From contig OX337234.1 in the NCBI GenBank assembly GCA_946965045.2, forward strand, positions 496,001-560,000: 64,000 nt of DNA, given 5' to 3'. Position numbers and translations under genes: made by a program. Shown in pieces: positions 26,101-62,187 of this stretch. The notes below the pieces were generated by a model. It was given only the letters and a program-made list of their open reading frames with translations, did no database searches and was not told where the DNA came from. The stretch's first letter is position 1. The number at the start of each line of letters is the position of its first letter. This DNA is from Epithemia pelagica (taxonomy: Eukaryota; Protista; Bacillariophyta).

Positions 26101-26142
26101 AGACAAGAGATGCTTTGATGCCACATTCAATGTATTGACCAT
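23129..26142 (-). CDS. Pentatricopeptide-repeat (PPR-like) protein, probably organelle-targeted; 2 exons
   Basis: Repeated units such as TSYMFNTLITAYGQLGNPDKAEKLFNEM and PDVVSYTSLILALSR. The two ORFs join in frame through a 44-nt GTATGC..TTCAG intron (25524-25567). Arg/Ser-rich N-terminus from ATG 26142. Confidence 0.8.
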
Positions 26143-30573: not shown

Positions 30574-31017
30574 GCCTCCCAGCGCATCGCGATGATCGAG
30601 GATCTCGACGGCGACGAAGCCGTCGGCGCCTACTGGGGCGAGGTCAACACCACAGTGCACAAGGGGCTTGGCGTTGACGGTGCCATCACCAACGGCCTGA
30701 TGCGTGACCTCGGTGACCTGGCGCCGGATTTCCAGGTGCTCGCGGCCGGCATCGGCCCCAGTCACGCCTTCGTGCACGTGGTCGAGATCGACGGCCCGGT
30801 CAGCCTGTTCGGCATGCGTGTGGAGCCCGGTGAGTTCCTCCATGCCGACCGCCACGGCGCCGTTGTCGTCCCCGACGACGTGTTGCCCGAACTGCCGCAG
30901 GCGATTGCCAGGATGCAGGCCAGCGAGCGGCTGATCCTGGAGCCGGCCCGCCAGCCCGGATTCGACTACGAGGCCTTCGAAGCGGCCTGGGCGGCCTTTG
31001 AAAAGGCACGGGTGTAA
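30574..31017 (+). pseudogene. Bacterial RraA/HMG-aldolase-family gene, 3' fragment
   Basis: Abrupt GC rise; AMIEDLDG..AVGAYWGEVNTTVHKGLGVDGAITNGLMRDL..GEFLHADRHGAVVVP. Confidence 0.8.
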
Positions 31018-31090
31018 TCGGGCCCTGGACATTGCAAAGCCGGCTTGTTGCTCAGACGGTTTTGCACGCTAATATTGGCCCTTCGTGCCC

Positions 31091-31800
31091 AACCTCTCGC
31101 GCTACACGCACCGTGTCGCCATCGCCAACTCGCGCCTCCTCGCCTTTGACCAGCACAGCGTGACCTTCAGATACAAGGACTACCGGGCCAAGGGCCGCTA
31201 CCGTCCCAAGACCATGCGGCTGGCCACCGGCGAGTTCATCCGCCGCTTCCTGCTCCACGTCCTGCCCAGCGGGCTACACCGCATCCGACACTACGGGCTC
31301 TTTGCCAATCACCTGCGCGCCGATAACCTCAACCGCGCCCGTGAGCTACTCGCCGTCAAGACAACTCCCGAAGAGGTAGCGCCCAGCGACGACGATCTCA
31401 ACACACCCACTTGTCCTAACTGCGGTGCACCCCTGATCGTCATCGAAACGCTTCTGCCCCGCTACCTGCCGCCGCCGCCGACCCCCTGTATGGGTGATCC
31501 ACCATGACCCCATCGCCTCACCGACAATCGAACTCTCCACACCGTTGGTCGACAACCGGCGACGAACTGATGTTGTCCTCCGACACCTCACCGGCTCCAA
31601 TCCGTCCAACCGAGCACCCGAGTGACGCGCTGGCGCCAACCACCAGCGCTCGGCAACACCTCAAAAACCTCATCAGCACCGTCTCCGATGCGCTGTCACT
31701 CGCTCCTATCCGACAACGCACTCATCAAATCCCCATAGCACACACCGATCATCAACCGCCGCGCCTCTCCCCCGCGCTTTCCTCCTTGTAGGCTTGTCAG
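31091..31800 (+). mobile_element. IS91-family transposase 3' fragment (to 31507) with downstream element end
   Basis: LSRYTHRVAIANSRL..VTFRYKDYR..EFIRRFLLHVLPSGLHRIRHYGLFAN and CPNCG, typical of the IS91 Y2 transposase C-terminus. Confidence 0.85.
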
Positions 31801-31967
31801 TCGCCTACCACCGATCGCCGTACCCGCCGCTCACCACCCCTGCGCCGGCAGGCGACTGACAACCCTGAAACGTAACGGACTTTTTGCAACTGGGGTGACG
31901 AGCGCTTTTGCTGCGCTGCGGCAGAGATTCTATCGGAAGTGGACGGCTGCAAATCGAACCAGCAAGG

Positions 31968-32445
31968 TTACCGGAGGAGTTCCAGGACCCTTCCGAACTC
32001 CTCGATTGCATTCATGCCCGCAGATTCCAGTGTGATCTGTATATGAGAGATACCCTCAGCGTGGTAAGACTTGAGCTCGGTAGCAATCTCTTCGGGTGTC
32101 CCAGTCAGGGGATCAGGCTCATCGTCGCCGGATCCTGACGCGGAGTCTCTGCTACCGACCAGCACGGTTGCGGTCCGTTCGAGAGTGTGCGGGTTGCGAC
32201 CGACTTCTAGACATGCCTCGTCCACCAGTCGACGCAAGTCCGGAATCGCGTTAGCACTGTTGTCAGTGTCGAACCAGTAAACATTCCAGAGGTCTGCGTA
32301 CCTGGCAGTCAGTCTAAGCATCTTTGGCCCAAGGCAGCCGATCAGAATCGGTGGGCCTCCGACGGTGGGACCACGGGGGCGCAACTCGCAATCACGCGCT
32401 TGATGGTAGACGCCCTCGAAATCTATCGCTCCGGCACGCAACATC
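31968..32445 (-). pseudogene. Bacterial LLM-class flavin-dependent oxidoreductase, 3' fragment
   Basis: FEGVYHQ..PRGPTVGGPPILIGCLGPKMLRLTARYADLWN..LTGTPEEIATELKSYHAEGISHI. Confidence 0.8.
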
Positions 32446-32565
32446 CCCACCGAAGAGAGCGCCGAGCTCGCGCTCAGAACGCAGCAGATCGTTGCCTATG
32501 AATCCGGCATCGCCAAGACGGTCGATCCCCTGGGCGGCAGCTATTACGTCGAATGGCTGACCGAG
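32446..32565 (+). pseudogene. 120-bp internal fragment of a bacterial methylmalonyl-CoA mutase-family gene
   Basis: Manual translation [40 protein letters not shown] matches the conserved ALRTQQ..DPLGGSY motif; not in the ORF track. Confidence 0.85.
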
Positions 32566-35500
32566 TTTCAGACATAATGGACCGGTAATAAAAGCAAGAA
32601 TGAACACATGCCTCTTCTCTAAGAGCAAGTTGCTTACATGAACATTTCTGGTAGTGGTTCTACGTGCTGACATTTTGCACAACAGTCACAAGCTACGTGG
32701 ATAGACAGATGACTCACGTGGATGTGCAATCATCTCATCATCTGCATGGCATCCACTTGCATATGGATGAAGCAAATGTACGTGAAGTTTTTGCATGAGG
32801 AGTGGCCAGACATAGCTCTTGATTTGTGCACAGGAGCTGCCCAGAACAATCAAGTGAACATGCAGGAGTTCCTCATCAGAGAAAAAGTGCCTTTGCTTGA
32901 AGTCATCAATGAAGAAACATTTGTTGAGGCGGTGTCAGGAAGCAATGACAAGCACATCCTGGTAACGTTCAAGTGCTCATTGGAAGAAAGTGATGGGGAA
33001 ACAAGCACAAATCTTTTCCTAGTTATGGCAAGGTTTGTCAAGCAGCGGCATTGGATGGCAACATGGAGTGCCTTCCTGTGGCTATTGGTTGAATGGCTAA
33101 AGAAATCAATAGGTCAGCCTGACTTCCAGAATGAGGCGGGTGCATCCATCTGAGACACTTCTTCCTTCCGATATTCCAAGCCTGATCCCTACAGTGCAAC
33201 CGTCCGAATCCGCTCTGCCGAGTGACTTACCAAGTTTGATGCCGAGTCCGCGCTGATACATACAAAATCCGTTCTCGGCTAAAAACATGTGGAAAATTGC
33301 AGGTTTGCTTAACGTTGAACATGCATGAACCAGACAATGACGGCCTATGGTGGTTCAACGACAAGACTCCCAAGTAATCCCAGTGAAACTCAGAAATGGT
33401 TGCTGCGTTCTCTACCGAAAACCCAAAAGGCACAATTCAGCATCTCGTAGAAACCAAACAGAATTGTTGGCATTAACTTTTGGTCATTAATGTAATTACA
33501 GCATATTTCGGGAAATGAACTTGTTCGATTTTCATGGCTTCCTTGTGGCTCGCGCCATTGTGGATGCAACGTATGTAAGGAGAAATTGAGGCTCTAAAAA
33601 CGATCGTGAACTAACAATAAGTTGCACTAATTAACTGATAGGAAGACTCACTTCAGCGCCGCAGCACGGTTGTACAGAAATCAATTGGAGCGGAAAGCAT
33701 CTGAAAGGGAGAAGGGATTACTGTGACACTCCTGGCTCTTAGTCAATAAGTTGGAGTCCCTTCATCACACTACCCTTTCAATCAAGCTTCATCAGCACCA
33801 AGTCAAGCCACCAATAGTAACCAGCATGAGGAAATCAAAGTGCAAGGAGTCATGTCAAGTCTCAAGTGTATTTGCCCGAGCGGCAGAAAATTTCGCTCCT
33901 CGTGCGCGCATGCCTGCATTTGAAGCGTAGGCACCCGTACCGTTCCTACTGCTGACCAGCTGCCGGTCAGCGCTGACCGCAATCTGGTAGCGCTGACCGC
34001 AAGCTGACAGCCGCACGTGACGAGAGTTGCGCGTCGTCTTGTGGTCCAGGTTTGCTCGACCATTCAATTCGAAGAATCCTATCTAGTGAAAGCCGCACCC
34101 TGGGCACTGTTGTGCACATTGACTTTGAACTTGAAAAGATACAGAGTATCGCGTGATATATTTTATACTCATTTCGGAAGCGAACTAGTTGTACGCTTGA
34201 AGAAGGATATAGGGATAAGACCATCAAAACCAATGGCAAGCTATCATTCAGACTATAACACACAAGTTTCGGATGAAACTGGAATGCTAGTGTCGCAAGA
34301 CTAGAATCACCTATTAAGCTGAGAGGATAGAGAGAACAAGCAAGCAAGAGCTACATTCTTTAGTTCGTTTTGGCCGGTTCCCCGTTTTGGACAATAAAAC
34401 CAGAGGAGGTCCACAGCCCCTTATTAGAAGTCCTTTCATCTTGCATTCCGTTTTAGCAGTCTGCATGGCATGAGAGGTGCTTAGAGATTATTTAGATGGA
34501 GAAACCTCACTCCTTAAGGATTTTGCATCATCATGAGGCAGACCAATCTTCTGTATGCTTTGTGCCATGGAGAATTTACCTGCAGTAGGTCTAATAAATG
34601 GCATCGTCTGGACTACTGTCCATAGCTAGGTCACGTCAACCGAAATGCCGCATACCACTTCGCGTTGCGGTTGTTATACTAGAGGATAATATGTAGGATA
34701 TTCGGTGGTCATACTGTCGGTGCTCTTTTAACATCGATTTTATTGAATTGGTTCGGCGGACCACCTCCCGATGACCGCGGTTTCCGATTTTGACGAGTCC
34801 CTGCTTTTGTACGAAAATTGGTTCCATTTTTTGCTTCTGTTTCGTCTTCGTCTTCATCGTCATTATTATGCCGTCAACCATTGTATCTCCTCCTTCACTA
34901 CTAGTAGTTATCGTGACCATACCGGGTAACGTCCCGGGCAGGGAGGACAACGTATGCGGATTGGGACGAGATTCGTTTTTGGAATTTTGGTTGGCCTGCG
35001 CTGCGAACAAATTCGATCCGCTTATGACTTCGCGTCACAAGGTTTTCATTTTTTGGGGTATCGTTTCTCCCATTACTGCTTGGATCCGTTCCACTTTTTG
35101 GGTGCAGATTGCCTACGAACATTCATGCCGTTCAGTTCCTTTCCAACTTCCCACGTTTTTTCCCTAGTGCATCGTAGAATTCGCGGTTCAATCCGTCCAA
35201 CGTTGACTTGGTGTACAGCGTCCCCTCCAACATCCTTGTCGTTCCGCCTTCGATGACGACGTCCCTTCACGAAAATGGTTCGGGGAATTGCAAATCGAAA
35301 GAAATGCCACGCGGTCGATTCTTCTTCATGTCGTCGTCATTTTCCCCTCCAGATACTGCCACCTTCCCCGAACCACCGTACACAGGACTCGTAACTGCGC
35401 CGTTTTCGCCGGTGAAACTGACTGTATCCGAACGCGACTATGATGTAGTGGTGGTCGTCGTTGTCACCGTAATCTCCTCCCTCCACCTACCCTCTTCCCC

Positions 35501-35893
35501 CCACAGAATACATGTCGAATAAAGCGCAAGTTGAGAAAACTGTTGACATCTAAATCATACTCCGTTGACTACGTTTGTTCTGTGGGTGTGAAAAAGAGCT
35601 GCGTCCCCTGCGTTGTCTCCCCACCACAGTACCATTTATAGTAGCCTGGCCTGTCGTTCTTGGTCGCTTTGCTCTCTGGCAAGGCGCCACTCACGTAGTG
35701 AACCGGCTGTGTTGCGGCTTTCATTTTTCTCTTTCTTGTGATCGCTGGAATGTCGAGGAGGAGCAACCCGGCGAAGATTGCTCGTCGTCGTCGGCCTCAT
35801 TTCGGAAGCTGCTCCACCGACAGTTGTGATGATGGTGCCGTCGTGAGCCCTCCAGGCTGTCGTCATCATCATTGTAGTCGACAACAGATCATC

Positions 35894-37078
35894 CTAGCAT
35901 GCAAGCCCGCCACGGTTCAAGGAATCCGCAAGGAAAGAGGCACGTTCGGTATCGGACACACATGTGTCGTTTAAGCCGTCATCCACGCCTTGTGTAGTGT
36001 TTGGTGGCTCCTCCTCATCTTCCAGAGGGGGGCATGCTGGCATTAGTTTTGTGTCGCGAGACGCGGAGTAGTTGATTGCGCTTTTAACCAACAGCAGCCA
36101 CGGATCGGGCAGGGAATTTCCCAATGTCATTCGGACCTTTCCAACATGTACTGGGTTGCTTACTTCGCCTGTGTAGATGGTCGGGATCCCAATTTGTGAT
36201 GCTGGGTTTGCCTTAATTTCGTCAACAAGCTTCTTCCAACGGAAAAGCGATACATTCTTTGGATTGTTGAGCTCTTTGTGCTTGAAAGACTCGAAGACCT
36301 CGTTACCCTTGACACAACCGGCAACGCCCCTGATGAACGTACAGAGTAGTTTTCGGGCCTCTTCAATGTCATGTACCGAACACTCTCCCGGCACCATTGA
36401 TAGAACAGACTTCGAGGCCCGTCTTCTCTTTGCCCCAAAGGTGATTGCAAGGCAGTCATATTCGGTTGCCGTTTCCTCGCTGCTGGCCCAATTCATCACT
36501 TCATCAAAACTCAAGCAGGGAACCAAAATCATGGACGGATCCTCTGAGTCAAAATATGTCTTCTGCGCGGAGCAATACAGTTTGTTGAATTTGTGGCCCT
36601 TGAGAGACGTGAAGCGTTTCCCGGCTTTCACGCCCACAAGAATCTTCCGCCTTTTGAGGTTTGAAGCCCCTGGTACATTCTCGAATAGGGCATCAGTTTC
36701 GACGTTCACTCCAACTGCTGCTTCGCCGAGATAACCGAAAGCCTTGTGACATGTTTCTGCATGTGATAGAAGGTGTGCTGCCTCTGCATCAGTGTTACCA
36801 AAACAGTCGAGTTTGAGACGGTTATTTTTGTGGTTTGCCGTGCCAGAGCTGTAATCTGGATTTCGAATCCCAGATTTGAGGTTTTCGTAGCAAGTCTTGT
36901 AAAGCCTTCCCTGATCATTTGTGCGTTTGATCACGTCAAAGTCATTGGCGGCTATGGTGATAAAGGAGTCGGCATCCCACACTGACTCCATGAACGTGAA
37001 ATATGTGCCAGCACCCCTGAGCTCCAACTCCTCCCTGGAAAGGGAAGCTCTAAAAGCAAGATCTTCATTGGCGATCAT
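35894..37078 (-). CDS. Uncharacterised eukaryotic protein, possibly HNH-nuclease-like
   Basis: Open frame from ATG 37078; C..GNTDAEAAHLL..H..NKL..QKTYFD resembles AAH(I/L) HNH_2-type motifs; assignment tentative. Confidence 0.4.
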   Translation of the reverse strand: MIANEDLAFRASLSREELELRGAGTYFTFMESVWDADSFITIAANDFDVIKRTNDQGRLYKTCYENLKSGIRNPDYSSGTANHKNNRLKLDCFGNTDAEAAHLLSHAETCHKAFGYLGEAAVGVNVETDALFENVPGASNLKRRKILVGVKAGKRFTSLKGHKFNKLYCSAQKTYFDSEDPSMILVPCLSFDEVMNWASSEETATEYDCLAITFGAKRRRASKSVLSMVPGECSVHDIEEARKLLCTFIRGVAGCVKGNEVFESFKHKELNNPKNVSLFRWKKLVDEIKANPASQIGIPTIYTGEVSNPVHVGKVRMTLGNSLPDPWLLLVKSAINYSASRDTKLMPACPPLEDEEEPPNTTQGVDDGLNDTCVSDTERASFLADSLNRGGLAC

Positions 37079-37383
37079 GTCGTCGCTCTTTCCCGTTGCA
37101 GACCAAACAAAAGGAACAGGCGCCATTCCTCGATGCGGTACGGTAATGTCTGATCGAGAGAGAAGAGGGGAAGAGTGTCATCGTCGTCGCCACTTTGAAA
37201 GGTTCCGAACGCGCCCCGAGAAGTTCAGAAAGACATAGCAGCGGGGTCACAATTTCGCTGTCGCTGTTGCCCGTCCGTCCGTCATCGTTCATGTTTTGAT
37301 TTTTGTGTGAATGAATACGGTCGACAAGCAGACCTGTGTTGCAAAGTCTAAAACGTAGTACAGACAGACTACCAAACAAATTA

Positions 37384-37945
37384 CTCCCTCCTGAAAGAAA
37401 ATAGTGCACGATTTTTTTTTTGGTTATTTTAGTCGCGTTAAAAACTCTCGTAGGCTCTGGTACAAACCTACAGGAGGACGGCTGGCTCATTCGGAGTCGA
37501 ACTCCACCCTGATTTCGTAGATGAACATATGCGCGAGTCTACACTATTATAGGAAAAGTACAACTTTTGTGTGCGACGAGTGAGCAGAACCATGGCCAAA
37601 GGTGCCGTCGTTGACCATGGAATTCAGCATGGAAATGGCACGAATCTTGTCAGTTGCACGCATATTCCTACTCTTTGATGCCCTGGGGGGCCGCCCTGAA
37701 GAGGACGTGTTCATAGGCGCCATAAAAGTCTCAACCGGTGGGCACTGAAAAGCAAAGCTCGAAATGGCGCCTTTTGAACGGTCATATCTCATCCCCTTGC
37801 AAGAATCGAACATATAAGTAATACACCAATATAGAGCTAATGAGTAGAGCTTTCTAGGGAAAAAAATTTTAGGAAAAAAGGACGTTTGCTCGTTGAGATA
37901 TCGTTTTTTTTCTATAATCGTGCACTATTTTCTTTCAGGAGGGAG
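37384..37945. mobile_element. Tc1/mariner (Stowaway-like) MITE, 562 bp
   Basis: Perfect 30-bp TIRs CTCCCTCCTGAAAGAAAATAGTGCACGATT; TA TSD at 37382-37383 and 37946-37947. Confidence 0.9.
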
Positions 37946-38103
37946 TACGTCCTATCTTAGATTGTGAGACTATCTATCCAAACCACAAAGATCGATCTCA
38001 TCGATCTTTGACCCTTTTAGTCTTGTCGACCTGTCGGTTGAATCCATTGAAGATCCCGTCACCATTGTCGACCCTTTTCATTCTGCCGTTGACCACTCTC
38101 ATC

Positions 38104-39327
38104 TCATGTTCCCGATGTGAACTCAAAGATGATCTTGCGGAAGATGTTGGAGTCAGCCGTCTTGCACATGTCTCTCAGACTCTTGTTCTCTCCGGCGTTG
38201 TCACACCTTGTTTTCTTGACTTCCGTTTTGTCGTCTTTCAGGTCTCGCATCAACGACATGACTTCATGCGGTGCATCCGACTTGGCTTTAAGGAGTCTAC
38301 TCCATGTCCTTCCCATGCAGTCGTCCACGATGCATAACCACACCTTGGCTCCTCCCAAGGATCTGTGCTCGGCTACTGTCGACGAGTCAATGAACAAACG
38401 TTCGCCGCAGATCTCACTCTGTGCCTTCGTGGTCTTCTTGACTGCCTTCTGCTGCATGTTGCTCATTTGACATTCTTCACATGCCTCGAGAGTCCCAGTC
38501 AGCTTAATTCCATGCTTCTTCGCTGTTACCTCCATCGAATCCTTGCTAGCTTGGCCCACAATCCGATGGAATCTGTTAATGTCGACGCATTCATTTGGTT
38601 TTGGTTTCTTCTTTGCTTGTTGCTTCTTCACTTCATTTGACCATGTAACTTTTCTTGTAGGCTTCTCTTGGCCCATCTCTTCAATTTCATCTTCCGAGTC
38701 TTCGTCATCTGCATCTTCATCTGTTACGCAGTTGACGTTCTTGGTTGGTTGAGGTGCATCTTTCACACATGCCACCTCCCCCTCCGATGGTTCCGACATC
38801 CTTGGAACCAAATCGACACCAACCAAAACGCCATCCTTTGTTCTGATGACTCGATCGAACGATAACGTCGCCCCGTCCTTGGTTAGCGTGATCGTTACCC
38901 CATTATTTGTTATTTGCCAGCCACTCTCCAGAGCTTTTGTCAGGCTAAATAACGGTTTTGGCTGACGCGGTGAAAGCTTGTTTGGCAAATTCATCATGTT
39001 GCGACGAAGATGTTCCATCAGCCTTCCTTGTGACGGCTTGGATAGATAGTCTCCCGTCATTTCGTTAGTTGGCTTGCACTCTGGCTGCATTAATCCCTTG
39101 CTTACTTGATCTGTAACAAAGAAATGCCTCATGTCCACATGACGAGTCCTTTTTCCGGTGCTCGCTCTTCCATTTTTGATCCATTTGAGGGTACTTTTGT
39201 TGTCCTGTTGTAATCGACACAGTGCAACGTTGCATCCTTGCTTTTCGAGAAATTTTCTCATCCATAAAATGTGCGACATTGCGTCGTCCACTGCTAATCG
39301 CTTCTTCGATGCGCCTGTGCGTTGCAT
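38104..39327 (-). mobile_element. Degenerate Ty1/copia pol fragments: RNase H followed by GAG-pre-integrase/integrase
   Basis: QDNKS..KRTRHVDMRHFFVTD..PTNEMTGDYLSKP (RNase H); HRIVGQAS..CEEC, GERLFIDS, IVDD, RCDNAGEN (integrase); no LTRs seen. Confidence 0.85.
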
Positions 39328-39469
39328 GAAATGTTGGAACGTGCTGTTTCCTAGCTACGTTTGCACAGGTTCTAGCTCAAACTGTTAGGTTCCCTCACTA
39401 GTGTGAGACTATTGCCCTATCTAGCGCATAGATTGTTCTTTCATGCAAAGTATGAGCCCATCGTTAACA

Positions 39470-39603
39470 CGTCGCTCATGTCGTCGACTTCATTGAACGC
39501 GCTCGGCAAACCCTGGTCCCAGTTCGTTGATCCGCTCCAGCATGTCGACATGGGCGGGCCGGAAGCGGGAGGTGTCGTAGTAGTCGCGAAAGGTCAGCTT
39601 CAT
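39470..39603 (-). pseudogene. 5' fragment of the bacterial gene downstream of the NicX-like gene (possibly acyl-CoA dehydrogenase-like)
   Basis: ATG overlaps the upstream stop (ATGA); MKLTFRDYYDTSRFRPAHVDMLERINELGPGFAER; homology boundary approximate. Confidence 0.4.
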
Positions 39604-41839
39604 GCCAGGTCCCCCTGAAGAACGCCATTGATGACAACCGGCGTGCCGTCGAGCGTGATGGTGCAGCCGCGCATGGGCAGGTCGAAATGGCCGAGCGTGA
39701 AACGGCCGGCATACTGGTTGGAGCCGGTGGACCACAGGAAATTGCCGGCAAAGGCGCGAAACTCGGTGCCTTGCACATCGCGCTTGTCATACAGCGCCAT
39801 GCTCTCCCAGCGGGCATGCGGATTCATGCCCCAGCCCACATGGGACAGGCCGTAGGCCACCGGGTCATCCCAGGCCGCCAGGTATTCGCGAAACAGTTCG
39901 GCGTCGACATTGTCGCCGGTTATCGCGCTGACAAAATCGTTCTCGACGACAAATCCGATCGTGTTCTGCAGGTAGGTCTTGAAGGTCAGGTTCATGTCGC
40001 CCGGCGCCATGACGATCTGCCCGTTGATGGTATTCTCGCCCGGAAAGCACAGGCACAGCCCGCCGGGCCAGTGAGCAACGCCGCCCTTGGCAGTGGTGAA
40101 GCCGGGCGTACCGCCACAAGGCGCGTCGCGCACGTCGATCACCAGGTCCGTGCCGGCTGCACTGGTCACCCGTATTTCGGATGCAGCCTTCAGCATGTCG
40201 ATGCCGAGCTGCACCTTGGGGCCGAGTTCGCCCTGCGGTTCCGTGCGCTCGAGGATTTCCGGATGCTCGTTGCAGATCACGAAGAGCCGCGCGCCGGCCT
40301 CCTCGATTTCCGGCCACTCCTCGGCGTGCAGCAGGCCCTCAACGGTGACGTCGACCACCACCTCGACCCGTTTCAGCGCTTCCACCACGTGGCGGATGCC
40401 GGCGATGGCGTTGGAGGCACCGGTGGACTTGACCGGCACCGGGGCGGTCTGCGGCGGGGTCTGCAGCACAATGGTCGAGTAGACGGCGCCCAGTTCATGG
40501 AGCGCCAGGGCACACAGCTGCTGCAACACGGGCCGGGACTGGCTTTCCGCCACGATCGCCACCTGCGTGCCGGCGCCGATGCCGTTCAGCGCCAATGCGC
40601 GCTTGGCATCTCCTCCGTCCGGCTCACTCCTTAGTTCACTTCCTTGCACCTACTCGTATGGCATTGGTCACAAAAACACGAAGAGAGAATGGGCGCGCAT
40701 CTGTACGTATAGTACTGACTACGTACAATTTACTGATAGGGGAACTCCGACCCACAGGAGCAAAACGGCCGCTTGGGAAGCGTAACCATTCTTTCAAATC
40801 GACGCACGCTCAGTAGCTGTCGGTTACCAAGCATGCTCTTGCTGACCGTAGATTCTTCGCCCGAGTACCGTTCTAGCCCCCGCAAGCACGGGTTGGCACG
40901 CAGGGCGAACCGCTGCAAAATACCATTTGCCAAAATCCTCACATGCCACTGCGAGAATTTTGCCAAAGCCTTCACATGTCCACGGTTTCCGAAATCCATC
41001 AGCCAACTCGTAAACGACGAACAAGCGACATGAAGTCATCTTATCCTTATCCAGGGAGGGAGGGTGGGAAAAAACTAAAACTCAGAGCAATACAAACTCA
41101 ATAGATGCTGGACCTGCAGGGAAGAGCACCTTCTCGAATAGATCAATCTGAAGACAGTGTGACCAAGACGATTGTCCCAATCCGTGGTTCAGAACTCTTG
41201 GTGAATTCTCACACACGTACTCGGATCTTTCTTCAATCGTCTGAATCTTGTAGTGTAGGTGAAGGTCTGTGAACTAAGTGACTGACACCGTCCGTTGTCG
41301 CCACCGGATTAGCTTGAGCACATGTAGGCATCTCCTCCGTCCGGCTCACTCCTTAGTTCACTTCCTTGCACCTACTCGTATGGCATTGGTCACAAAAACA
41401 CGAAGAGAGAATGGGCGCGCATCTGTACGTATAGTACTGACTACGTACAATTTACTGATAGGGGAACTCCGACCCACAGGAGCAAAACGGCCGCTTGGGA
41501 AGCGTAACCATTCTTTCAAATCGACGCACGCTCAGTAGCTGTCGGTTACCAAGCATGCTCTTGCTGACCGTAGATTCTTCGCCCGAGTACCGTTCTAGCC
41601 CCCGCAAGCACGGGTTGGCACGCAGGGCGAACCGCTGCAAAATACCATTTGCCAAAATCCTCACATGCCACTGCGAGAATTTTGCCAAAGCCTTCACATG
41701 TCCACGGTTTCCGAAATCCATCAGCCAACTCGTAAACGACGAACAAGCGACATGAAGTCATCTTATCCTTATCCCCCACCTTGCCTCATCTGCCGTATTT
41801 CGATAGCAAAGACGTTCTGTCAAATCGTCTTTGAGAAAA

Positions 41840-46976: not shown

Positions 46977-47030
46977 GGCTGAAATTTCTTGTTCATCGAT
47001 ATCGTAAGAGGTCTTTTCTTCATTTCCGTC

Positions 47031-51294: not shown

Positions 51295-51304
51295 GGGGGA
51301 AGGC

Positions 51305-52801
51305 GTGGAGGCATTTGTAACCGGACTGGCAAGCTTGATGGACCCGGCGGTGCTGGTGGCAATCCTGATCGGCTCCGTCGGCGGGCTCATCATCGGCGCC
51401 GTGCCCGGCATCGGGCCGGCCATCGCCATTGCCATCCTGCTGCCGGCAACGGTGTTTCTCGACGATCTTGTCAGCCTGGTGCTGCTGCTTGGCGTCTATG
51501 GCTCATCCATGTATGGCGGCGCGATCCCGGCCATCCTGATCAACACGCCCGGCACGCCGGTCAACGCGCTGACCACCTATGACGGTTATGCCATGACCCG
51601 GCGGGGGGAGGCGTCGCGCGCCCTGTCCCTGGCCTATTCGGCCTCGTTCTTCGGCGGATTCTTCTCGATTTCCATGGCGCTGATCGCGCTGTTCGTTTTC
51701 GGCCCCTACCTGCGTGACCTGGGCGCCCTGTTCGGCCAGCGCGACATCCTGATGGCGGCGATCCTCGGCGGGGTGCTGTTGATCGCGGCCCACCGCCAGA
51801 CCATGGGGATCGCCGCCATGCTGTTCGGATTCGGTTTCCTGATCGCCATCATCGGCAAGCAGTCCTCCCGCAAGGTGGATCGCTACACCTTCGACATCGA
51901 GTATCTTTACGCCGGCTTCAACCTGATCGTCGTGATCGTTGGCATCCTTGCACTCAGCCAGGCGCTCTTCCTGATGATCGGCAAGGATGACGACCCGCCC
52001 GAGGCACGCATCACCGGCGGGCTGTTGAGCGGATTCCGGGAGCTGGCCAGCAAGCGACTGATCGCCGTTCTGTCCGCCGCCTACGGAACGATCATGGGCA
52101 TCATTCCGGGTGTCGGAGAGTTCGTGGCCCAGTTCTTCAGCTATTCCACCGCGCGGTCACTGTCGAAGAATCCGGCCCGTTTCGGCCATGGTTCACCCGA
52201 GGGGCTGGTGGCGTCCGAGACCGCCAACAACGCGGTACCGTCCGCGGCCATGATCCCGCTGCTTGCACTGGGGGTGCCCGGCGAGGCGCTCACCGCCATG
52301 ATGATGGTGGTCTTCTTCGATGCCGGCATCAAGCCCGGGCCGGATGTGTTTGAAAACAATCCGGACTTCCTGTTCAGCCTGTTCACCGCAATGCTGATCA
52401 TCAACGTCCTGGTGCTGCTGACACTGCTGGTATCGACAAAGTATATTGCCCGCATGATCTACATACCCAACCGCATCCTGGGCGCCTTCATCATGATCTT
52501 GTCCTTTGTCGGGGTCTATTCGATCCGCAACAGCCTGACCGACTGTATTTTCGCGGTGCTGTTCGGGTTCATCGGCCTGGTGCTGCGGCGCCTCAACTGG
52601 CCGCTGGTGCCGATCGTCTAGGGGCTTGTGCTCGGATCCATTATCGTCGAACGTCTGACGGCCGGGGCAGGACAGATCAAATCCGCGGTCGATTTTGTCA
52701 ATCGGCCGGTTTCCGGAACGCTTTTTGTGGTGATCCTGTTGGTCACGGGATACATCATCTGGTCGTCGGTCAGGAACCGGCGCACGGAATATCAACAATG
52801 A
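51305..52801 (+). pseudogene. tctA: Bacterial TctA permease with premature stop
   Basis: GLIIGAVPGIGP..GGAIPAILINTPGTP..ASETANNA..IPLLALGVPG; TAG at 52619-52621 interrupts PLVPIV*GLVLG and the frame continues to TGA at 52799-52801. Confidence 0.9.
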
Positions 52802-52976
52802 CCAAACGATCATGGGAGGAACCAATGAAAAAACTTGCAATGGCGGCCGCGCTGGCCGCCACCGTGGCCGTCTCCGGCGCCATGCCGGCGGCCGCTGAAT
52901 ACCCCGAATCGCCGGTCCAGTTCGTGGTGCCGTTCCCGCCGGGGGATTTCGAGGACATCCTGACCCGCATGATCGC

Positions 52977-55900
52977 TAGGGTCTTCAAACTTAGGTAAAT
53001 GAAATTTTTGCTTAACTTGCTATGAAATTTAGGCTAAGTTTAGGTTTTGAAGTTTAGGTAGTTTAGGTGGCTATGGAATACGGCTATGGAGTCTCATTTT
53101 TTTCAATACATAGAAATCGAACCAAACAAGTCATCATCACAATGATCCACAACTTGTTCATTCGTTGCTTTATGGACAGTGGATCTTACCTTCATTAAAT
53201 ACCGTAAGTTCAGCCTAGCTCGCAGACAGACTTCCGCCTTGTCTTGCCCAAGATTACTGCGCAACTTACTCCAAACGTTGTTTTTGAGTGGCTTGGCAAC
53301 TCGCTCGACAGAGATAGAGCCAGTCGAACGAACCGAAAGAAGTGGTTCAATCACAAGATCGTACAACTTACTTGGAGGAGCAATGCTAAAAAACTCCAGC
53401 CTCCCTTGGTGGCCACCTGTGGTACTCACCCACTGACTCACCATTTGGATCGTGAGTTCGCGCTCTTCCTGGAATCGATCAGAAGGTGGACGTGGGCTCT
53501 CTGTGGGGAAGAGATCAATCCACTTCCCTGTGTGACCAAGATAGGACCTGAACTCCTGATCCACAATCAACCTGATGTCCCTTGTGTCCGGAGCTTCGAC
53601 CCTTCCCCACACAGTGGGACGCATATTGGGTGGCTCGACAGGTCCAGCATTCGGTGGTGGGGGTGGAGGTGGTTCCTGTGCAGGAATCACAAAGAACTCA
53701 ATTGCATCCTGCATGCAACGAGCAATTGATGGGTGAATGATAGGTCGCTTGGGGATTCTGGACCTGAAGGGATCCACGAGAAAAGCCCAGATTTGGTACT
53801 TGTCTAAGAGACCAACTTTCCGTCCAGGTGGTTCCGATCCATCATAGTTGAACCGATTGTCGCAGAACTCAACAATGGAGTTCCGTGCCCCACGGAGATT
53901 GAAGATTGCATCAATGGATCTGCTGCCACTTGCTGTTCCTGAACCCAATACACCATTCAACTCGTTGCGCATGGCAACAATCACGGGGTAGTACGCGGAG
54001 ATTGGAAAGTCATCGTCCGACACAAGCTTTGTTGCATGTTCAATCACAGCATAAATCTTGGCAACAACTTCCACCTTAGCCCATAGATCACGTGTAACTA
54101 GTCGAAGGGTTGCATCAATCTTTTCCTTACGCCTCTGTGTTCGCGAGTTGTAGTATTGCTCAAACATGGGATGGTGCCCGTTGCACCATTCATAAAAAGG
54201 CTTTTGGTTCAGAACCGACTCCAAGGTCATACCAACCTTGTTGAACCTTGTCTCAGAGTAGTTGGAGACATTGCCACAGGTTGCTGGTAGATCGCCAGTT
54301 CGGACTAGCTCATGTCGAATCCCATCTACATTGTCTGTGGTTGAAAACTCCATCAGCATGGCAATGTCTGACAGGAGTGAATCAATACATGGGACCTTGG
54401 CCACATCCTTTGCCAACAGGTCAATACAATGAGCACAGTCACGATTGCTCAGTATGTTGGGCTCTTTGGGGTTGTTGGACTTGTAGATTGCACATGCCTC
54501 TTTCACAACTTTCGTGGCAGCGTTGTCTGTTGCAACACAGCACAAGGGAGAATTGTACTCACGTCGCGTCTTCACCATGAAATCAACCATGTCTTGCGTC
54601 TCAGCCTCTGTTGCATGGGCGAGGTTGCGAAGACGAGAGGCCTTTGCAAATAAAGTAACACTACCTTTCGCAATGGTGGAGAGAATGGTGCTGGTACCGT
54701 TGCAGGTGACACCATCAGCTGCAATGGTCATGCCTCCTGGAATCTTTTGCATCATGGTGTTCAGCTCTAGTTGACACTGTTTGTCAATCACCATGACGTA
54801 GCGCTTGTAGATTGTGTCTGGGTGGTGGGGCACAAACTTCATAATACCCTTACCAAACCGTGTGACGAGTTCGTCTTGGACGAACGGGTCCAACAGACGT
54901 TGCATGGGCTCGAAGCGTGCGAGGGTTGTTTCGACAGACTTCATGATGAGACGATTGGCCATCTGTTCTGTCAGAACAGTACCAAAACTCTGTATGGACG
55001 ACTGCTGGTGTTTCTTGCGACCTGCTTTGTCTCCTGGTTTGGACCTGGCCTTGTCTCGTAAACTTGTTGACAGCGAGGATACAGAACTTGATGCACCTGA
55101 AGACTCTGATGCCATCACCCTCTCTTGGCTGAGTGGACCACCAACAATCAAACCCAATTGTTTCTTGGCACGCTTACTAGCTTGAGTTTGGCCATCACAG
55201 AGTTGGCGAATTTCAGTAGGAGCGCTCTTGCATTTCTGAATGATGTGATCAGATGCAACACTTGCATTGAAAGTCTTCCAATTTTTGTACATCTTGCAAT
55301 GGATGCACACAATCTTCAAGTATCCTTCTCGATCCGGGTCAGGGGAAATCTCAAACTGCTCTCGGATGTATTGGTTGGCTTTCTTTTTGGGTGGCTTTCG
55401 CTTATTTTGCGACAACGTCGTTGAGTCGTTGGTCGTAGTATCGTCTTCATCGTTGGCGTCACTTCGTCCCGTAGCCACTTCGAATGGTTCATCCTGCTCC
55501 TCGTCGCCTTCCGTCGTCGTCGTCGAAACCATGGCCGTCGTCGTGCCTTCTTGTTGTTGCTGTTCCTCGTCTTGTCCTTGTCGTTGTTGTGTTGCAGCTG
55601 TCAACGGTGACAGATCTTGGAACGTCACAACAGTAGTATTCGGCTGCTCGTCAGCAGTACTTTCGTTCTCCATTGCAACTTCTGCTGATCCTGTCTCCAA
55701 CAAATGTGATCGGAGTTTGTTTGATTGCTGAATCGTTTGTTGTTGTTCATCGTTCATGTGTCATCATTGTTGTTGTTCTTGCAAAGATCCCAAAGATATC
55801 AGCCTGTCAAGATCTCATGCCAACTGCCAACATCAACGGTTGGATACCTACGGTACCTATGCCTAGTTAACAAAAGGGCCTACCTAAACTTCGGTGGACA

Positions 55901-55983
55901 TGGCGTTGAGTCTTGTAAGTTACGAAAACTTAGGCCCCTAAATTTAGGCGGAGAAACTTCGGCTAAGAAACTTGAAGACCCTA
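52977..55983 (-). mobile_element. Complete hAT DNA transposon, 3007 bp
   Basis: 12-bp perfect TIRs TAGGGTCTTCAA; 8-bp TSD ATGATCGC (52969-52976, 55984-55991); subterminal TTAGG/CCTAA repeats. Confidence 0.95.
53103..55757 (-). CDS. hAT transposase (BED finger, DUF659-like core), intact 884-aa ORF
   Basis: CIHC..DHIIQKC, IAADG, NRDCAHCIDLLAKD, SETRFN, SVERV. Confidence 0.9.
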   Translation of the reverse strand: MNDEQQQTIQQSNKLRSHLLETGSAEVAMENESTADEQPNTTVVTFQDLSPLTAATQQRQGQDEEQQQQEGTTTAMVSTTTTEGDEEQDEPFEVATGRSDANDEDDTTTNDSTTLSQNKRKPPKKKANQYIREQFEISPDPDREGYLKIVCIHCKMYKNWKTFNASVASDHIIQKCKSAPTEIRQLCDGQTQASKRAKKQLGLIVGGPLSQERVMASESSGASSSVSSLSTSLRDKARSKPGDKAGRKKHQQSSIQSFGTVLTEQMANRLIMKSVETTLARFEPMQRLLDPFVQDELVTRFGKGIMKFVPHHPDTIYKRYVMVIDKQCQLELNTMMQKIPGGMTIAADGVTCNGTSTILSTIAKGSVTLFAKASRLRNLAHATEAETQDMVDFMVKTRREYNSPLCCVATDNAATKVVKEACAIYKSNNPKEPNILSNRDCAHCIDLLAKDVAKVPCIDSLLSDIAMLMEFSTTDNVDGIRHELVRTGDLPATCGNVSNYSETRFNKVGMTLESVLNQKPFYEWCNGHHPMFEQYYNSRTQRRKEKIDATLRLVTRDLWAKVEVVAKIYAVIEHATKLVSDDDFPISAYYPVIVAMRNELNGVLGSGTASGSRSIDAIFNLRGARNSIVEFCDNRFNYDGSEPPGRKVGLLDKYQIWAFLVDPFRSRIPKRPIIHPSIARCMQDAIEFFVIPAQEPPPPPPPNAGPVEPPNMRPTVWGRVEAPDTRDIRLIVDQEFRSYLGHTGKWIDLFPTESPRPPSDRFQEERELTIQMVSQWVSTTGGHQGRLEFFSIAPPSKLYDLVIEPLLSVRSTGSISVERVAKPLKNNVWSKLRSNLGQDKAEVCLRARLNLRYLMKVRSTVHKATNEQVVDHCDDDLFGSISMY

Positions 55984-56836
55984 ATGATCGCGGCCAAGAT
56001 GCAGGAAATGACCGGCGTTTCGGCCTCGGTGGTCAACCGCCCGGGCGGCGGCGATGGACCGTTCCCGGGCGCCCTTGAGGTGCTGGACGGCCCCACCGAC
56101 GGTTCGGTTGTGGGTTCCTTTGTCATCGATGTGCCGATCGTCGGCCCGTTGATTGATATCGGCATGGAAAACGACAGTTTTACGCCGGTCGGCATTTTCC
56201 TGACCTACCCGTTCGTGCTCGCGGCCAAGGGTGACGCACCTTACAAGAACATGGCAGAACTCGCCGCCCACGCCCAGGACAATGACGTGGTTCTTGGTCA
56301 TTTCGGAGCCGGACTGACCCCGACACGCGCGACGTTCGTGGCGGCCAAGCTCATGGACTTCGAGTTTGCCGACGATTCGGCCTTTGACCTTCTGGACTGC
56401 AACTCGCTGTCCTCCGGTGATGCCGACGTCATTAACACGACCCTGGCGCTGATCGAACCGTGCCTCGGCGACGTGACAATCCTCGCCAATATCGGTTCGG
56501 AGCCGATCGGCAAGCTGCCCGGCGTGGAAACCCTGTCCTCGCAATCCGGCGCCAGCGATCTGGAGCTGTGGAACGGTCTCTTCGTGAAGAAGGGCACACC
56601 GCAGGAGGTGATCGACAAGCTCGCCGAAATCTCGGCCGCCACCATGGCCAGTGAGGAAGCACAGGAACTCATGAAGGCAACCGGCGCCCGGGTCTATTGG
56701 CAGGGCACGGAGGAATCCATTGCCCGCATCGAGGCCGACCGGGTCAAGAGCGCCGAAATGGACAAGATCATCGAAGAGTGATCGCCAACCCGCGGTGACC
56801 GCCCGGCGCGGTCACCGCTTCGTTCCGGGAAAATTC

Positions 56837-57049
56837 ATGCAGCGCATCAGACTTGGCATCTTGCAAACCAACCACGACAAGTCGGTGGAAGTCGGGGACG
56901 CCTTTCCCGACGATGCCCACCGGTTTCGCGACATGTTCGATGCACAGGAAGACCGCTTCCAGTATCGCATTTACATGACGATTGGCGGTGAGGTGCCGCA
57001 GGACTTGGATGAGCAGGATGCGTTCATGATCACCGGTAGCCCGCTGAGC
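56837..57049 (+). pseudogene. Bacterial class I glutamine amidotransferase-like gene, 5' fragment
   Basis: MQRIRLGILQTNHD..YMTIGGEVPQDLDEQDAFMITGSP, truncated after ITGS. Confidence 0.75.
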
Positions 57050-57274
57050 CGCCTTGCCACGTGACAATCCCGTGACACTGGTCCTGACACGGTTGCGGGC
57101 CGAGTCGTTCGGATTGGAGCACACTGCTTCGTCAGTTTTCCGGGGGCGTTGACATGCCGTCGAAGTCACTCCAGTTTGCCGAAGCTTTGCGCTGCAACCT
57201 TGCCGCCGTTCCCAGCAGCGAGCCCGCCGCTTTTGAACACGCCAGCAAGGTCATTTTCAGCCGACAGGTGTTGC

Positions 57275-58810: not shown

Positions 58811-59040
58811 CTATATGAACGTCTCTGTGCAATTCATCGTCGGTCGCTCTCTGCCCACGCCGGAGATGCTGCACCTGATCGCTGAGGCCTACGCCCGCGA
58901 GGTGATCTACCTCGAGGATGACGAGTGGTGGGATGCCAACTATCAGTACTTCGAGCAGCCCACCCAGGGCGAGGCCAAGGGCTACCTGATCGACTACAAC
59001 CACAAGCACACCATGATGAACGCTGTCCTGCCACATCACA
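58811..59040 (+). other. GC-rich coding-like fragment of unknown origin
   Basis: YMNVSVQFIVGRSLPTPEMLHLIAEAYAREVIYLEDDEWWDANYQYFEQPTQGEAKGYLIDYNHKHTMM; strong GC3 bias; not DUF1624-like. Confidence 0.4.
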
Positions 59041-61164
59041 GCGTGCAGCTAACTGAGCTTCTAAACTTGCTCGTTCTTGCTCGTAACGAGGAAGGATCGG
59101 ACCTACTAGCTAGTTTAAGAAAGTACGGTACGATTCTAATTATAATAACATGGTCGTTGATTGTTCAAGGCTGGAGACTAGGCAAGTCATCCTAAGCCAA
59201 CTAAAAGCTGATACAACGAGATGACGATTTCAACTGTGTTTCTAAAACTAAACATTCCATTCATGCAATTAAAAAGTCGCTTTCATCGTTGCATTCATCG
59301 TCATCATCACTTCCGTTGTACTCGTCGTCGTCGTCCAACGCACTTGGTTGTTAGACGAGCAAGACGCTCTGCATCACTTGGCGGGACCTTCGTCCGATGC
59401 CGTTGGTTCGGCAAAGAACACTCTCACGAGCCTTTCCGGAAACATTTTGTTGGTAGCATCGATGAAGGATGAGGTCATTAGGCCTACCCAAAGCGCTTTT
59501 TTCAGTCGGGCTGTGGCCGTCCCAAGGAACTGGAATCAGGAGGATCTGTTTGGTCCGCATCGAGACCCGGAACAGCTGCTGGCTATTTGCGATACAGATC
59601 TATGGCTGCGTGACACCATTGGCCTTCGATCCCTTTGGAACCAACAACGGGTCTTTGTCTATCGCAGTCCCACCCATCATGAACCCTTGCCCACGGAAGA
59701 ATATGTGAACATTGTGGCCCGGTTTCTTCGTGGGGTAGTGGGGAACAATGCTAACTCCACCGCCGTGCGAGTCGTTTTGGAATCCATTTGCCATGAAGAA
59801 GTCGACATGCAAGTATTGGTGTTGTAGGGGGAACTGGGAGAGAATGCTGCCTGTGTTATCATGACTATCTTTGCATGCTTACTTTTTGAGACTTTCTAGT
59901 CCCTGGTCTCCTTGATTCCTGTTTCGCAACTCTTGATCCTTAAACTCGTGAGTTTTATCTATACATTCTAATCTCTCTCGTCGCATTGGAATACCACATC
60001 ACTCCAGCTCAACTGGCTGGGACACACTAGCTCTGACAAACTAGGCTCTGTCAGACTCAAGGATGACCAGAGATCCTAAGCTGCATCAACAATTAAAGCA
60101 GGCTATCAACAACATGCGGCTTACATATCTATGACAGGTGACTGGCTCATCGTTTGGTGCCTTAATTAGAGGATATTCAAGTAGGAATGCTTCAACCACA
60201 TGAACCCAAAGAAAAGCCGGAGGCAGCGCTTGCTACCCACATTCGAACATGTATTAGCTAGCTAGGGGCTTGATTCTTACGGTAACGTTCAATTGTGCAC
60301 ATGCAGCAGACACGAGAAACGACTGGAATCACCCCTTTGATTCCTGTTGCTCATACTAGCTAGGCCGCCCTTTCACAGCCACTACGTTTCTGCGCGTTGA
60401 TTATTTGACTTCGAGTCCCAACTTTGTCCTTCAAGGAGTTCTTTTTGGGCTGCAATGTGTCTTCGCCAAGCCATATCTTTTTGCTCGGTTCACTTGGTGG
60501 TCAATGACTCTCGGATTGCTAACCTCCTCGGTATACGGTTGCTTCTATTGCGCTCGAGAGGATGGGAGAATGCAATAGCCACGCTCTCCTCAGGCAGAGC
60601 AACAAGAGTTACAGTAAGTTGTTTATTTTTCTTCCTTCCACTGTGGAACTAAAAAGTTAAGAGTCCAAGGGGCAAAGCTGGAAGCCCGAACCGTACCTCG
60701 TTTCTTTTAAGAGAGGTGGACCATCGTCAGACCACGACGATCCTAGCTATTCTAACTATAACTAGCAATTTTTTGAGGGTGGTTTTGCTGTGGCAGTCAT
60801 GATGATCACTTCCAACGTCGCATGGGCGTGGGCTCCCAATGAAATGCCTCGACCAATGAAAGAACTCAAGTTCTCGATGAAGTAAGGTGACGCATAAAGA
60901 CCAATCACAACGTCTCCGATGATGAAGCTCCAATAGAGGCTTGCAACGTAGGTGTAAGAGAAATGGAGCATATGAGTGCTTTAGATGATCTCTCCTTCAG
61001 CTGCTAGTGCAACTCGGAAACGACAAAGGCAATTTCTGGGTCCGTGTCGCTCAGCAAAACAAGACGACGAGCGAGGAGCCAGGTATGATCCTTGGTTGGT
61101 GTGCATGTCTGGGCAATGCAGGAGCAGCTGTCGTTGGCCACACTAGTGCTTCTATTGCCTTGCC

Positions 61165-61735
61165 CGTCCGCCAGGACCAGCCGGGCCTCGAAGCTGTCGT
61201 CACGCGGGGTCTTCAGCGTGGCAACGAGCTGCCAGTATTCCTCGCTGACGAAGCGCTCGATTTCGCTTTCCCGGTCACAGATGAGACGCAGTGCCACGGA
61301 CTGAACGCGGCCCGCGGAACGGGCGCCCGGCAGTTTGCGCCACAGGACGGGCGACAGGTTGAAGCCGACCAGATAGTCGAGCGCGCGGCGAGCGAGGTAG
61401 GCATCGACCAGCGGTTCGTCGATGTCGCGCGGATGGGCCATGGCGTCGAGCACGGCCTGTTTCGTGATGGCGTTGAACACCACCCGTTTGACCGGCTTGT
61501 CGTCCAGGACACCACGCTTCTTGCGCAGCACCTCCAGCACGTGCCAGGAAATCGCCTCACCCTCGCGGTCCGGGTCCGTGGCCAGGATCAGGCCATCCGA
61601 GTCCTTGACGGCATCACTTATTTCCTTGAGCCGCTTGTTGGAAGCGGTGTCGACCTGCCAGGTCATGTCGAAGTCTTCGTCCGGCTTTACCGATCCGTCC
61701 TTTGCCGGCAAATCACGGACATGGCCAAAGGACGC
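61165..61735 (-). pseudogene. topA: Internal fragment of bacterial DNA topoisomerase I
   Basis: ASFGHVRDLP..LATDPDREGEAISWH..RRALDYLVGFNLSPVLWRKLPGARSAGRVQSVALR..EEYW. Confidence 0.95.
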
Positions 61736-62023
61736 CTGTTCGTCATCTATACCGGCTTCTGGGGCTTCTACGTGGCCTGCAACGTGCCGCTGATCGACCC
61801 GGCAACCATTGACGGCCTGATCACCGGAGAAACCTGGACGGCGACGACCATCTACCTGACACCGACGACGCTCGGTGCGATCACCATGAACTTCCTGATG
61901 TCGCTGTCGGGTGGCATGCTGGTGGCCTTCATGGTGTCCAAGGGCAACGCCTTCTGGACCTATTCAGGCGGTCCTGCCGGCATCATCACGGCATCAGCCG
62001 GCAACGACATCTATCACCCGATC
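61736..62023 (+). pseudogene. Internal fragment of a bacterial ammonium transporter (Amt family)
   Basis: IYTGFWGFYVACN..TTLGAITMNFLMSLSGG..WTYSGGPAGIITASAGNDIYHP. Confidence 0.7.
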
Positions 62024-62187
62024 TATAAACCATTTGTTACAAACAAAATGTCCTAAAATAGCTTGTGTACCATGATAAAGAGGTAAACAATAGTAAGTAT
62101 CAGATTTATCAACCTTCATTTGCTGTGCCACATTTGCTTGGGATATACATTCTGGTTGCAGTGTAAGTGAAACATTTGTATGGAAAA

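Follow-up and report, generated by a model that had tools for sequence, protein, structure and literature searches.

The 64,000-nt stretch of the diatom Epithemia pelagica analysed here (assembly GCA_946965045.2, contig OX337234.1, positions 496,001 to 560,000 of the forward strand; below, the window) contains two copies of a PPR gene. The second of them is interrupted by a 31.6-kb interval (30578-62187 in the coordinates of the window) composed of bacterial gene fragments, alga-type blocks and host transposable elements (TEs). The data presented below demonstrate that this insert is genuine, and suggest that it was probably formed by the repair of one double-strand break, into which foreign fragments from a mixed pool were end-joined.

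The interrupted PPR gene

PPR copy 1 (~23.1-26.3 kb, minus strand) is the inverted partner of copy 2. A repeat search within the window pairs positions 23758-25095 of copy 1 with 29240-30577 of copy 2, and positions 23261-23755 with 62188-62682, in both cases at 91% identity. Repeat and paralog alignments place the 5' part of copy 2 at 28442..30577 (+), with the break at 30573-30577, and its 3' part at 62188..62860 (+). In a three-way alignment, copy 2 tracks copy 1 up to ...CGTCTCCAG and restarts after the insert with TCC(G/A)(G/A)AGCAGGCAATCCC, also given as TCCGGAGCAGGCAATCCC. Compared with copy 1 and three further paralogs, copy 2 has lost 6 nt of the target (TCCTGG) and carries no target-site duplication. 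The sequences that end the left part and begin the right part are adjacent in all four of the intact PPR paralogs compared. A preliminary description of the locus had noted that copy 2 halts at this point and restarts at 62188 on the same strand with about two codons of copy-1 sequence unaccounted for; the repeats and the alignment agree with it, and the missing codons are exactly TCCTGG.

Additional PPR paralogs lie just outside the window and on a second contig, and all of them were compared with both halves of copy 2. The left half is 89.5-91.2% and the right half 88.2-89.5% identical to each paralog. Since the halves are similarly distant from every paralog, both are parts of one gene that is separate from all of the other copies. 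The fragment at 62188 phases with copy 2 and with no other PPR paralog, which was the point on which the preliminary description had staked its reading of a single split gene. No branch or loose end that would correspond to an empty PPR allele was seen at 30577 in the read contigs. Contig ctg906l of the public assembly used for comparison (ENA ERZ21939226) was considered as such an allele and rejected, since the insert is present in it and the intact PPR genes that it contains are different paralogs.

The 5' part of the PPR gene continues in frame into the first bacterial piece, an RraA fragment, and the two form a chimeric open reading frame (ORF) of 589 aa (29248-31017, +) that is also predicted by gene callers (P0027, PPR + PF03737). 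Such an ORF would be a ready-made fusion, putatively driven by the host promoter.

Composition of the insert

Along the interval, blocks of 57-67% GC alternate with blocks of 47-50% GC, and one piece has a GC content of 32%. Bacterial gene fragments were identified by Pfam and NCBIfam profiles and by comparison with bacterial loci. The bacterial-type pieces number at least nine and range in length from 118 bp to 4.9 kb; all are cut within genes, and they lie in mixed orientation (strand order + + - + ... - + + ... - +); bacterial-type DNA amounts to ~9.7 kb in total. The earlier count of at least eight unrelated GC-rich bacterial pieces accompanied by host-type pieces is thereby upheld and slightly raised. 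The estimate of ~19 kb before two TE insertions is likewise upheld, as the interval minus its two large TEs measures 18,917 bp; both are host elements that inserted later, and one haplotype has received further host TEs.

Piece P1 (30578..31060, +, end approximate; 67% GC) is the 3' part of an RraA-family gene with its downstream spacer (Pfam PF03737, 2e-14); it shares ~66-73% DNA identity with alphaproteobacterial RraA genes, the match starting 5-10 nt past the junction. P2 (~31061..~31880, +; borders with P1 and P3 approximate) comprises the 3' part of an IS91-family transposase gene (profile positions 240-355 of 356; Y2_Tnp 1e-26, transpos_IS91 2.5e-31) and an insertion sequence (IS) end with a 13-bp hairpin. 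It is followed by the C-terminal half of a luciferase-like (LLM) oxidoreductase gene (P3, ~31881..32447, -; Pfam Bac_luciferase 1e-12) and by a fragment of a methylmalonyl-CoA mutase gene only 118 bp long (P4, 32448..32565, +; profile positions 338-378 of 512, Pfam PF01642 1.2e-17).

The central piece is itself split by TEs into three parts. P5a (39494..40604, -), collinear with the bacterial contigs L082 (83%) and L014, holds the 5' stub of an acyl-CoA dehydrogenase (ACAD) gene and most of a NicX-family gene. P5b (50283..52976, +; Pfam TctA 3e-116) holds the nicX 5' end, an intergenic spacer, tctB, tctA and the 5' end of tctC. P5c (55992..57048, +), recognised by Pfam and bacterial loci, contains the remainder of tctC and, up to a cut at 57048, the first ~83 codons of a glutamine-amidotransferase-like gene. 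Once the two TEs are removed, P5a-c (39494-57048) join up into a single contiguous segment of 4.9 kb that is Rhodobacterales-like. The order and orientation of its genes recur in a bacterial contig from a public run (ACAD-NicX | TctB-TctA-TctC-next gene, GATase; 83-87% DNA identity), which indicates that the segment is one natural piece.

P6 (57049..~58815, +) carries eamA and a DUF1624/HGSNAT_cat gene that is truncated near codon 210 of 322 (Pfam and protein alignment). P7 (58816..~59050, +) is a GC-rich piece with no relative among 1.8 billion protein representatives, where the sole matches were the gene call of P7 itself and a spurious one due to a repeat. Near the right end are a topA fragment encoding the Toprim domain and the start of the Topoisom_bac domain (P8a, 61187..61735, -; Pfam), a fragment of an ammonium transporter (Amt) gene (P8b, 61736..62020, +; tblastn) and the 167-bp piece of 32% GC (P9, 62021..62187, -), which is coding-like, adjoins the 3' part of the PPR gene and has no Pfam or viral match. 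A viral origin of P7 and P9 was considered and dropped, as neither gave a match.

Two alga-type blocks are interspersed with these pieces: E1 (32566..39493, 47% GC) and E2 (59051..61186, 48% GC). E1 contains an intact 410-aa ORF (35894-37126, -) belonging to a family with 41-66% identical relatives in other diatoms, including an Amphiprora transcriptome and a Bacillariaceae metagenome-assembled genome, the best relative reaching 66%. This ORF has no Pfam domain and no second member in its 90% protein cluster of the assembly. Another ORF of E1 (38104-39327, -) is Copia-like and resembles the C-terminal end of a Copia-type Pol fused directly to the start of a gag-pre-integrase/integrase, a non-collinear order. 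It has no match in Pfam and PDB sequence searches, and the gag-pre-integrase/rve/RVT_2 clusters found for it by the Atlas feature search (0.79) are a lead only. E2 holds a fragment of a palmitoyl-protein-thioesterase-like gene (59348-59827; Pfam PF02089 1.5e-7). A search for the source locus of E1 and E2 that covered the window, ~80 kb of host loci nearby and the protein clusters at 90% found none. The two blocks may be host DNA that was displaced, DNA of a foreign eukaryote or the remains of old TEs.

Presence of the insert in host chromosomal DNA

In run X1, a 3570-nt Logan contig covers positions 30420-33989, from the PPR gene through P1-P4 into E1, at a depth of 119.8, and the neighbouring copy-2-specific unitigs of the same run have depths of 100-110. 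Run X3 comes from a different sample and yields independent k-mer contigs covering 30420-32714 (2296 nt) and 32713-33989 at depths of 216 and 214; a contig of sample X4 (31077-33825) stops short of the PPR junction. On the right side, 94-99% of the sampled 31-mers are present in three runs. In the ENA assembly, ctg1302l carries the whole insert, ctg1288l carries the PPR|RraA junction and breaks off within the LLM piece, and ctg906l begins in tctB and extends past the right junction. Because ctg1288l and ctg906l differ from ctg1302l by point differences, they represent the other haplotype. Multi-copy host TEs are located precisely inside bacterial genes, which argues for nuclear residence of the bacterial DNA.

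Two checks proposed in the preliminary description, namely the spanning of the junctions and a host-like depth of the bacterial segments, have therefore both turned out positive. Independent contigs from two runs cross the PPR|bacterial junction and all of the left internal junctions, three assembly contigs carry the outer junctions, and the depth over the bacterial segments is close to that of the adjoining copy-2 unitigs. The insert is genuine and not an assembly artefact. Compared with the two ENA haplotype contigs, the window deviates at three positions (28137, 28592, 31036) and by a single 748-nt unit of a repeat in a retroelement; it therefore derives from another assembly version.

Transposable elements nested in the insert

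A DIRS/Ngaro-type retroelement of 9.7 kb with split direct repeats (40605..50282, -) inserted later within nicX. Its split repeats (448 and 259 nt) are 100% identical, and both bacterial flanks map to the same base of the bacterial contig L082. The Pol ORF (1250 aa, 43224-46976, -) clusters at >=90% with copies on other assembly contigs. The ORFs of this element have no Pfam or PDB sequence match, and in the Atlas feature search the neighbours of Pol are RVT_1 clusters (0.95) and DNA-methylase clusters (0.91-0.92), in keeping with a methyltransferase-bearing element of DIRS type. The 748-nt repeat unit (40788-41535), located at the left end of the retroelement, is present in the window and missing from ctg1302l.

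The second large element is a hAT transposon (52977..55983, -) that inserted later in tctC and is flanked by the 8-bp duplication ATGATCGC at 52969-52976 and 55984-55991; in bacteria, tctC runs unbroken across this site. Its transposase belongs to a 19-member cluster (>=90%) distributed over at least nine assembly contigs. A Stowaway-like miniature inverted-repeat transposable element (MITE) of 566 bp with perfect 32-nt terminal inverted repeats (TIRs; TACTCCCTCC...) lies within E1 (37382..37947). Two further DNA transposons, polymorphic between assemblies or haplotypes, are found in ctg1302l and are lacking from the window. One is a 6.5-kb TIR element at 33987-33989 (L086:14731-21236) with the TIR CAATAGGAGCACTT and a TA duplication, and it is also visible as loose ends in the read contigs, in which site 33988 occurs both filled and empty. 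The other is a 2.1-kb pogo-like element (DDE_1) at 34902/34903 (L083:12226-14331).

Bacterial donors

TctA is 91% identical to Rhodobacteraceae proteins, and 500 aa of it align in one frame with the bacterial contig L014 at 90% (tblastn). P6 matches the sequence L088 with 78.7% DNA identity from 57049 on. The nearest named relatives of its EamA belong to Hoeflea and other Hyphomicrobiales (70-76%), in which the DUF1624 gene, the operon partner of eamA, lies next to it too. The topA fragment has 84-85% aa identity to Rhizobiaceae topA versus 66% to a Rhodobacterales record, and the Amt fragment has 75-76% identity to Rhodobacteraceae ammonium transporters (tblastn), the collection used for both assignments being one of plasmids that holds only a few chromosomes. 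These similarities point to two donor orders, Rhodobacterales and Hyphomicrobiales. Pieces of the two orders adjoin directly twice, at P5|P6 and at P8a|P8b. Comparison with relatives of both sides shows the P5|P6 junction to be blunt; it is the sole internal junction resolved to the base.

Reads of a marine metagenome (run X5) match the LLM piece over 219 and 133 nt (32078-32447) and deviate from it at no more than one position (0 to 1 differences). They are identical over 32078-32296, and one of them departs exactly at 32447, the border with the mutase fragment. A very close relative of the LLM donor is thus still present in the sea; in the JGI metagenome contigs only a 52% relative of this piece was found. 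The LLM piece has no plasmid match, and the plasmid matches obtained are at 64-67%, against 77-87% for chromosomal ones. Since the plasmid matches are the weaker, the pieces look like random chromosomal DNA, and an origin by plasmid transfer or conjugation was dropped on these two grounds. The relatives of the donors are of Rhodobacteraceae and Hoeflea/Rhizobiaceae type, and not the organelle or obligate endosymbiont from which nuclear DNA of mitochondrial, plastid or diazoplast origin (NUMT, NUPT and NUDT) is derived.

Age and decay of the insert

All of the pieces examined lie on both haplotypes. Between the haplotypes there are 17 differences in 50549-62187 and 2 in 30578-32324 (~0.14%), and the flanking ~9.1 kb of PPR DNA (22075-30577, 62188-62801) shows a single indel between them. 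The differences are thus about 10 times denser in the insert (19 in ~13.4 kb) than in the flanks, a contrast for which our own binomial estimate gives p ~5e-4.

Within bacterial frames, the allelic differences comprise 5 synonymous, 8 non-synonymous and 1 nonsense change (9:5). The last one is an in-frame TAG in tctA (52619-52621) found in the window haplotype only; the other haplotype has TTG and an uninterrupted frame of 498 aa. The 9:5 count, including this allele-specific stop, gives no sign of purifying selection. The ~1,700 bacterial codons are otherwise free of frameshifts, and CpG is not depleted in the bacterial pieces (observed/expected 1.06-1.12), both of which point to a young insertion. 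Decay driven by CpG mutation was considered and rejected, as 6 of the 19 allelic differences fall at CpG sites, which is no convincing excess. The insert is therefore older than the divergence of the two compared haplotype copies, yet young. Most of its genes are truncated and TEs sit within nicX and tctC, which together with the tctA stop and the 9:5 ratio does not resemble a domesticated horizontal gene transfer (HGT); judged from its reading frames, the insert appears to be non-functional and to be evolving neutrally.

The preliminary description had also called the locus a snapshot of bulk bacterial-DNA capture. This holds in so far as raw, non-working bacterial DNA is present in the nucleus; the capture is, however, not a fresh one, given its presence on both haplotypes and the ~0.14% of allelic differences.

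Origin of the insert

We consider the repair of one double-strand break by end-joining of a mixed pool of foreign fragments to be the probable origin of the insert. According to this scheme, a break would have hit the second copy of the duplicated diatom PPR gene, and non-homologous end joining would have ligated into it a pool made up of random chromosomal pieces of at least two phycosphere bacteria (Rhodobacterales-like and Hyphomicrobiales-like) and of alga-type fragments. The net result would have been a gain of ~19 kb and a loss of 6 bp of the target. Host TEs (the DIRS/Ngaro-type element, the hAT element and the MITE, and in one haplotype the pogo-like and the 6.5-kb TIR elements) would then have hit the locus later.

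The lesion has a single insertion point and a small target deletion without duplication, and it contains several non-adjacent fragments with arbitrary cuts, direct joins and mixed orientation. The small deletion, the arbitrary cuts, the mixed orientation, the ~0.1-5 kb sizes, the abutting donor orders and the presence of alga-type fragments all fit end-joining of one break. The earlier proposal that a break had been repaired by ligation of many captured fragments is supported by the lesion and by the abutting pieces, and its single-event component is not demonstrated. We infer both the arrival of all pieces in a single repair event, favoured because the two donor orders adjoin directly and because one junction is blunt, and the route of the bacterial DNA into the nucleus.

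Several observations weigh against this scheme. Direct proof of a single event is absent, and for want of close donor genomes all internal junctions but one have defied resolution to the base. The donors were assigned by best hits of single genes. E1 and E2 lack a recognisable source locus, and the intact conserved 410-aa ORF of E1 would be odd for random filler. The empty allele was not seen, so that the polarity of the event (an insertion here versus a deletion in all other paralogs) rests on the comparison of paralogs. In addition, the runs of the diatom all belong to a single study, and data that went into the assembly may be among them; the Logan contigs, too, are not single molecules.

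The order of events may also have been stepwise: a first insertion would have killed PPR copy 2, and the dead locus would then have gathered bacterial and alga-type pieces and TEs one after another. The locus indeed keeps taking insertions, as seen from the Ngaro-like element, the hAT element, the MITE and the two TEs polymorphic between assemblies or haplotypes. All of the recognisable later insertions, however, are host TEs with their own ends and target-site duplication, and the bacterial pieces have neither. Moreover, pieces down to 118 bp adjoin one another directly, the donor orders alternate (R|H ... H|R), which would need repeated hits at the ends of pieces, and every piece examined is found on both haplotypes. 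We therefore regard a stepwise accumulation as unlikely.

In another scenario the mosaic was pre-assembled, be it on an extrachromosomal concatemer or element, at another locus or in another eukaryote, and entered the PPR gene as a block. An origin outside this genome would suit the alga-type blocks, which lack a source locus in the assembly and one of which contains an intact ORF of a diatom family with a best relative at 66%, and transfected DNA usually concatemerises before integrating (10.1101/379644). The outer ends of the insert, however, show neither terminal repeats nor a transposase nor anything else typical of an element, the target has a 6-bp deletion, and in the assembly protein clusters none of the pieces turned up again outside the haplotype contigs. 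A cargo transposon or a virus would likewise be expected to leave traces of its own, but no repeats link the outer ends, the target was deleted rather than duplicated, and the transposase-type ORFs found belong only to nested TEs with their own ends. Entry as a pre-formed block is in our opinion quite improbable. It overlaps with the end-joining scheme in one respect, since concatemerisation followed by capture is of the same end-joining family.

Directed transfer by a bacterial mobile system (a conjugative plasmid, a T-DNA-like, an IS91 or an integron-borne system) might be suspected from the IS91 fragment among the pieces, and laboratory conjugation of DNA from bacteria to diatoms has been reported. 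The IS91 copy is only a truncated fragment, though, the other pieces are ordinary chromosomal genes (topA, the mutase, transporters), their plasmid matches (64-67%) are weaker than the chromosomal ones (77-87%), and no oriT, relaxase or border-like repeats were seen, so that we deem such a transfer highly improbable. Finally, a misjoining of reads from culture bacteria to diatom reads, which a probably xenic culture and the near-identical marine-metagenome reads could suggest, has a negligible probability in view of the junction-spanning k-mer contigs at host-like depth in separate runs, the three assembly contigs that have the same junctions yet differ by single-nucleotide polymorphisms, and the multi-copy host TEs that interrupt bacterial genes, in one case with a target-site duplication.

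Comparison with known systems and significance

Diatom genomes contain many genes of bacterial origin, and sceptics ascribe many claims of HGT to contamination. To our knowledge, naked non-functional bacterial DNA has rarely been caught in the chromosome of a free-living alga. The transfers from Wolbachia to the nuclei of its hosts are said to present, as does our locus, raw and mostly non-functional bacterial DNA in a eukaryotic chromosome; unlike the multi-donor patchwork described here, they reportedly derive from a single intracellular germline symbiont, often as large and collinear tracts.

Closer parallels are provided by the NUDTs of Epithemia clementina, nuclear integrations of diazoplast DNA that form long-read supported mosaics of 8-42 non-adjacent fragments (PMC12377750). 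They share with our locus the diatom nuclear host, the mosaic of non-adjacent bacterial fragments and the truncated, decaying, non-functional genes (PMC12377750). Their donor, however, is one obligate intracellular endosymbiont, whereas here the nearest relatives belong to Rhodobacterales and Hyphomicrobiales that live freely or in association with algae; one insertion combines two donors or more, alga-type DNA is interspersed, and an endosymbiont is neither known nor implied. In complex or mosaic NUMTs and NUPTs, unrelated donor fragments are ligated at one chromosomal break, mainly by end joining (PMC6215612), as multiple unrelated fragments appear to have been joined at a single break here. 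The donors of those are organelles of the same cell, while bacterial DNA must first enter the cell and the nucleus. The same fragment-joining signature is found in the arrays produced by biolistic transformation of plants, in which pieces of tens of bp to kilobases are joined in random orientation, bluntly or with 1-4-nt microhomology, are mixed with displaced genomic fragments and are sometimes accompanied by a target deletion of a few bp (10.1101/379644). Delivery in that case is artificial, in contrast to the natural insert on both haplotypes, built of DNA of wild bacteria.

The class of mosaic foreign-DNA insertions is thus already known, and what is new here is that the insertion is multi-donor and not endosymbiont-derived. 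From this point of view, the locus looks like a raw, undomesticated stage of bacteria-to-alga gene transfer. Its strengths are the clean target site, the presence on both haplotypes and the host transposons inside bacterial genes, which vouch for nuclear residence. As DNA of at least two bacterial orders was joined, neither an endosymbiont nor a dedicated transfer system need be invoked. We tentatively put forward, as a possibility, that DNA of mixed surface bacteria was fixed by one end-joining event in a free-living diatom, and that this may happen repeatedly. If it is recurrent, the bulk capture of mostly useless bacterial DNA would be a standing process in diatoms and a source of raw material for their bacterial genes. 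The in-frame PPR::RraA ORF illustrates how capture may at once create putatively host-driven chimeric genes. The locus makes it possible to test the frequency of capture, the rate of decay or silencing and how often expressed chimeras arise.

Surroundings of the locus

The PPR genes sit in a larger duplicated block (18721-21432; 20685-20845 / 63841-64000), with at least four or five PPR paralogs in total. The window also contains a 903-aa S49 peptidase ORF, and another 903-aa gene call is located past its end. Beyond ~63.8 kb (an approximate position), the identity of ctg906l with the primary contig drops to ~90%, as would be expected if the haplotypes differ in structure there.

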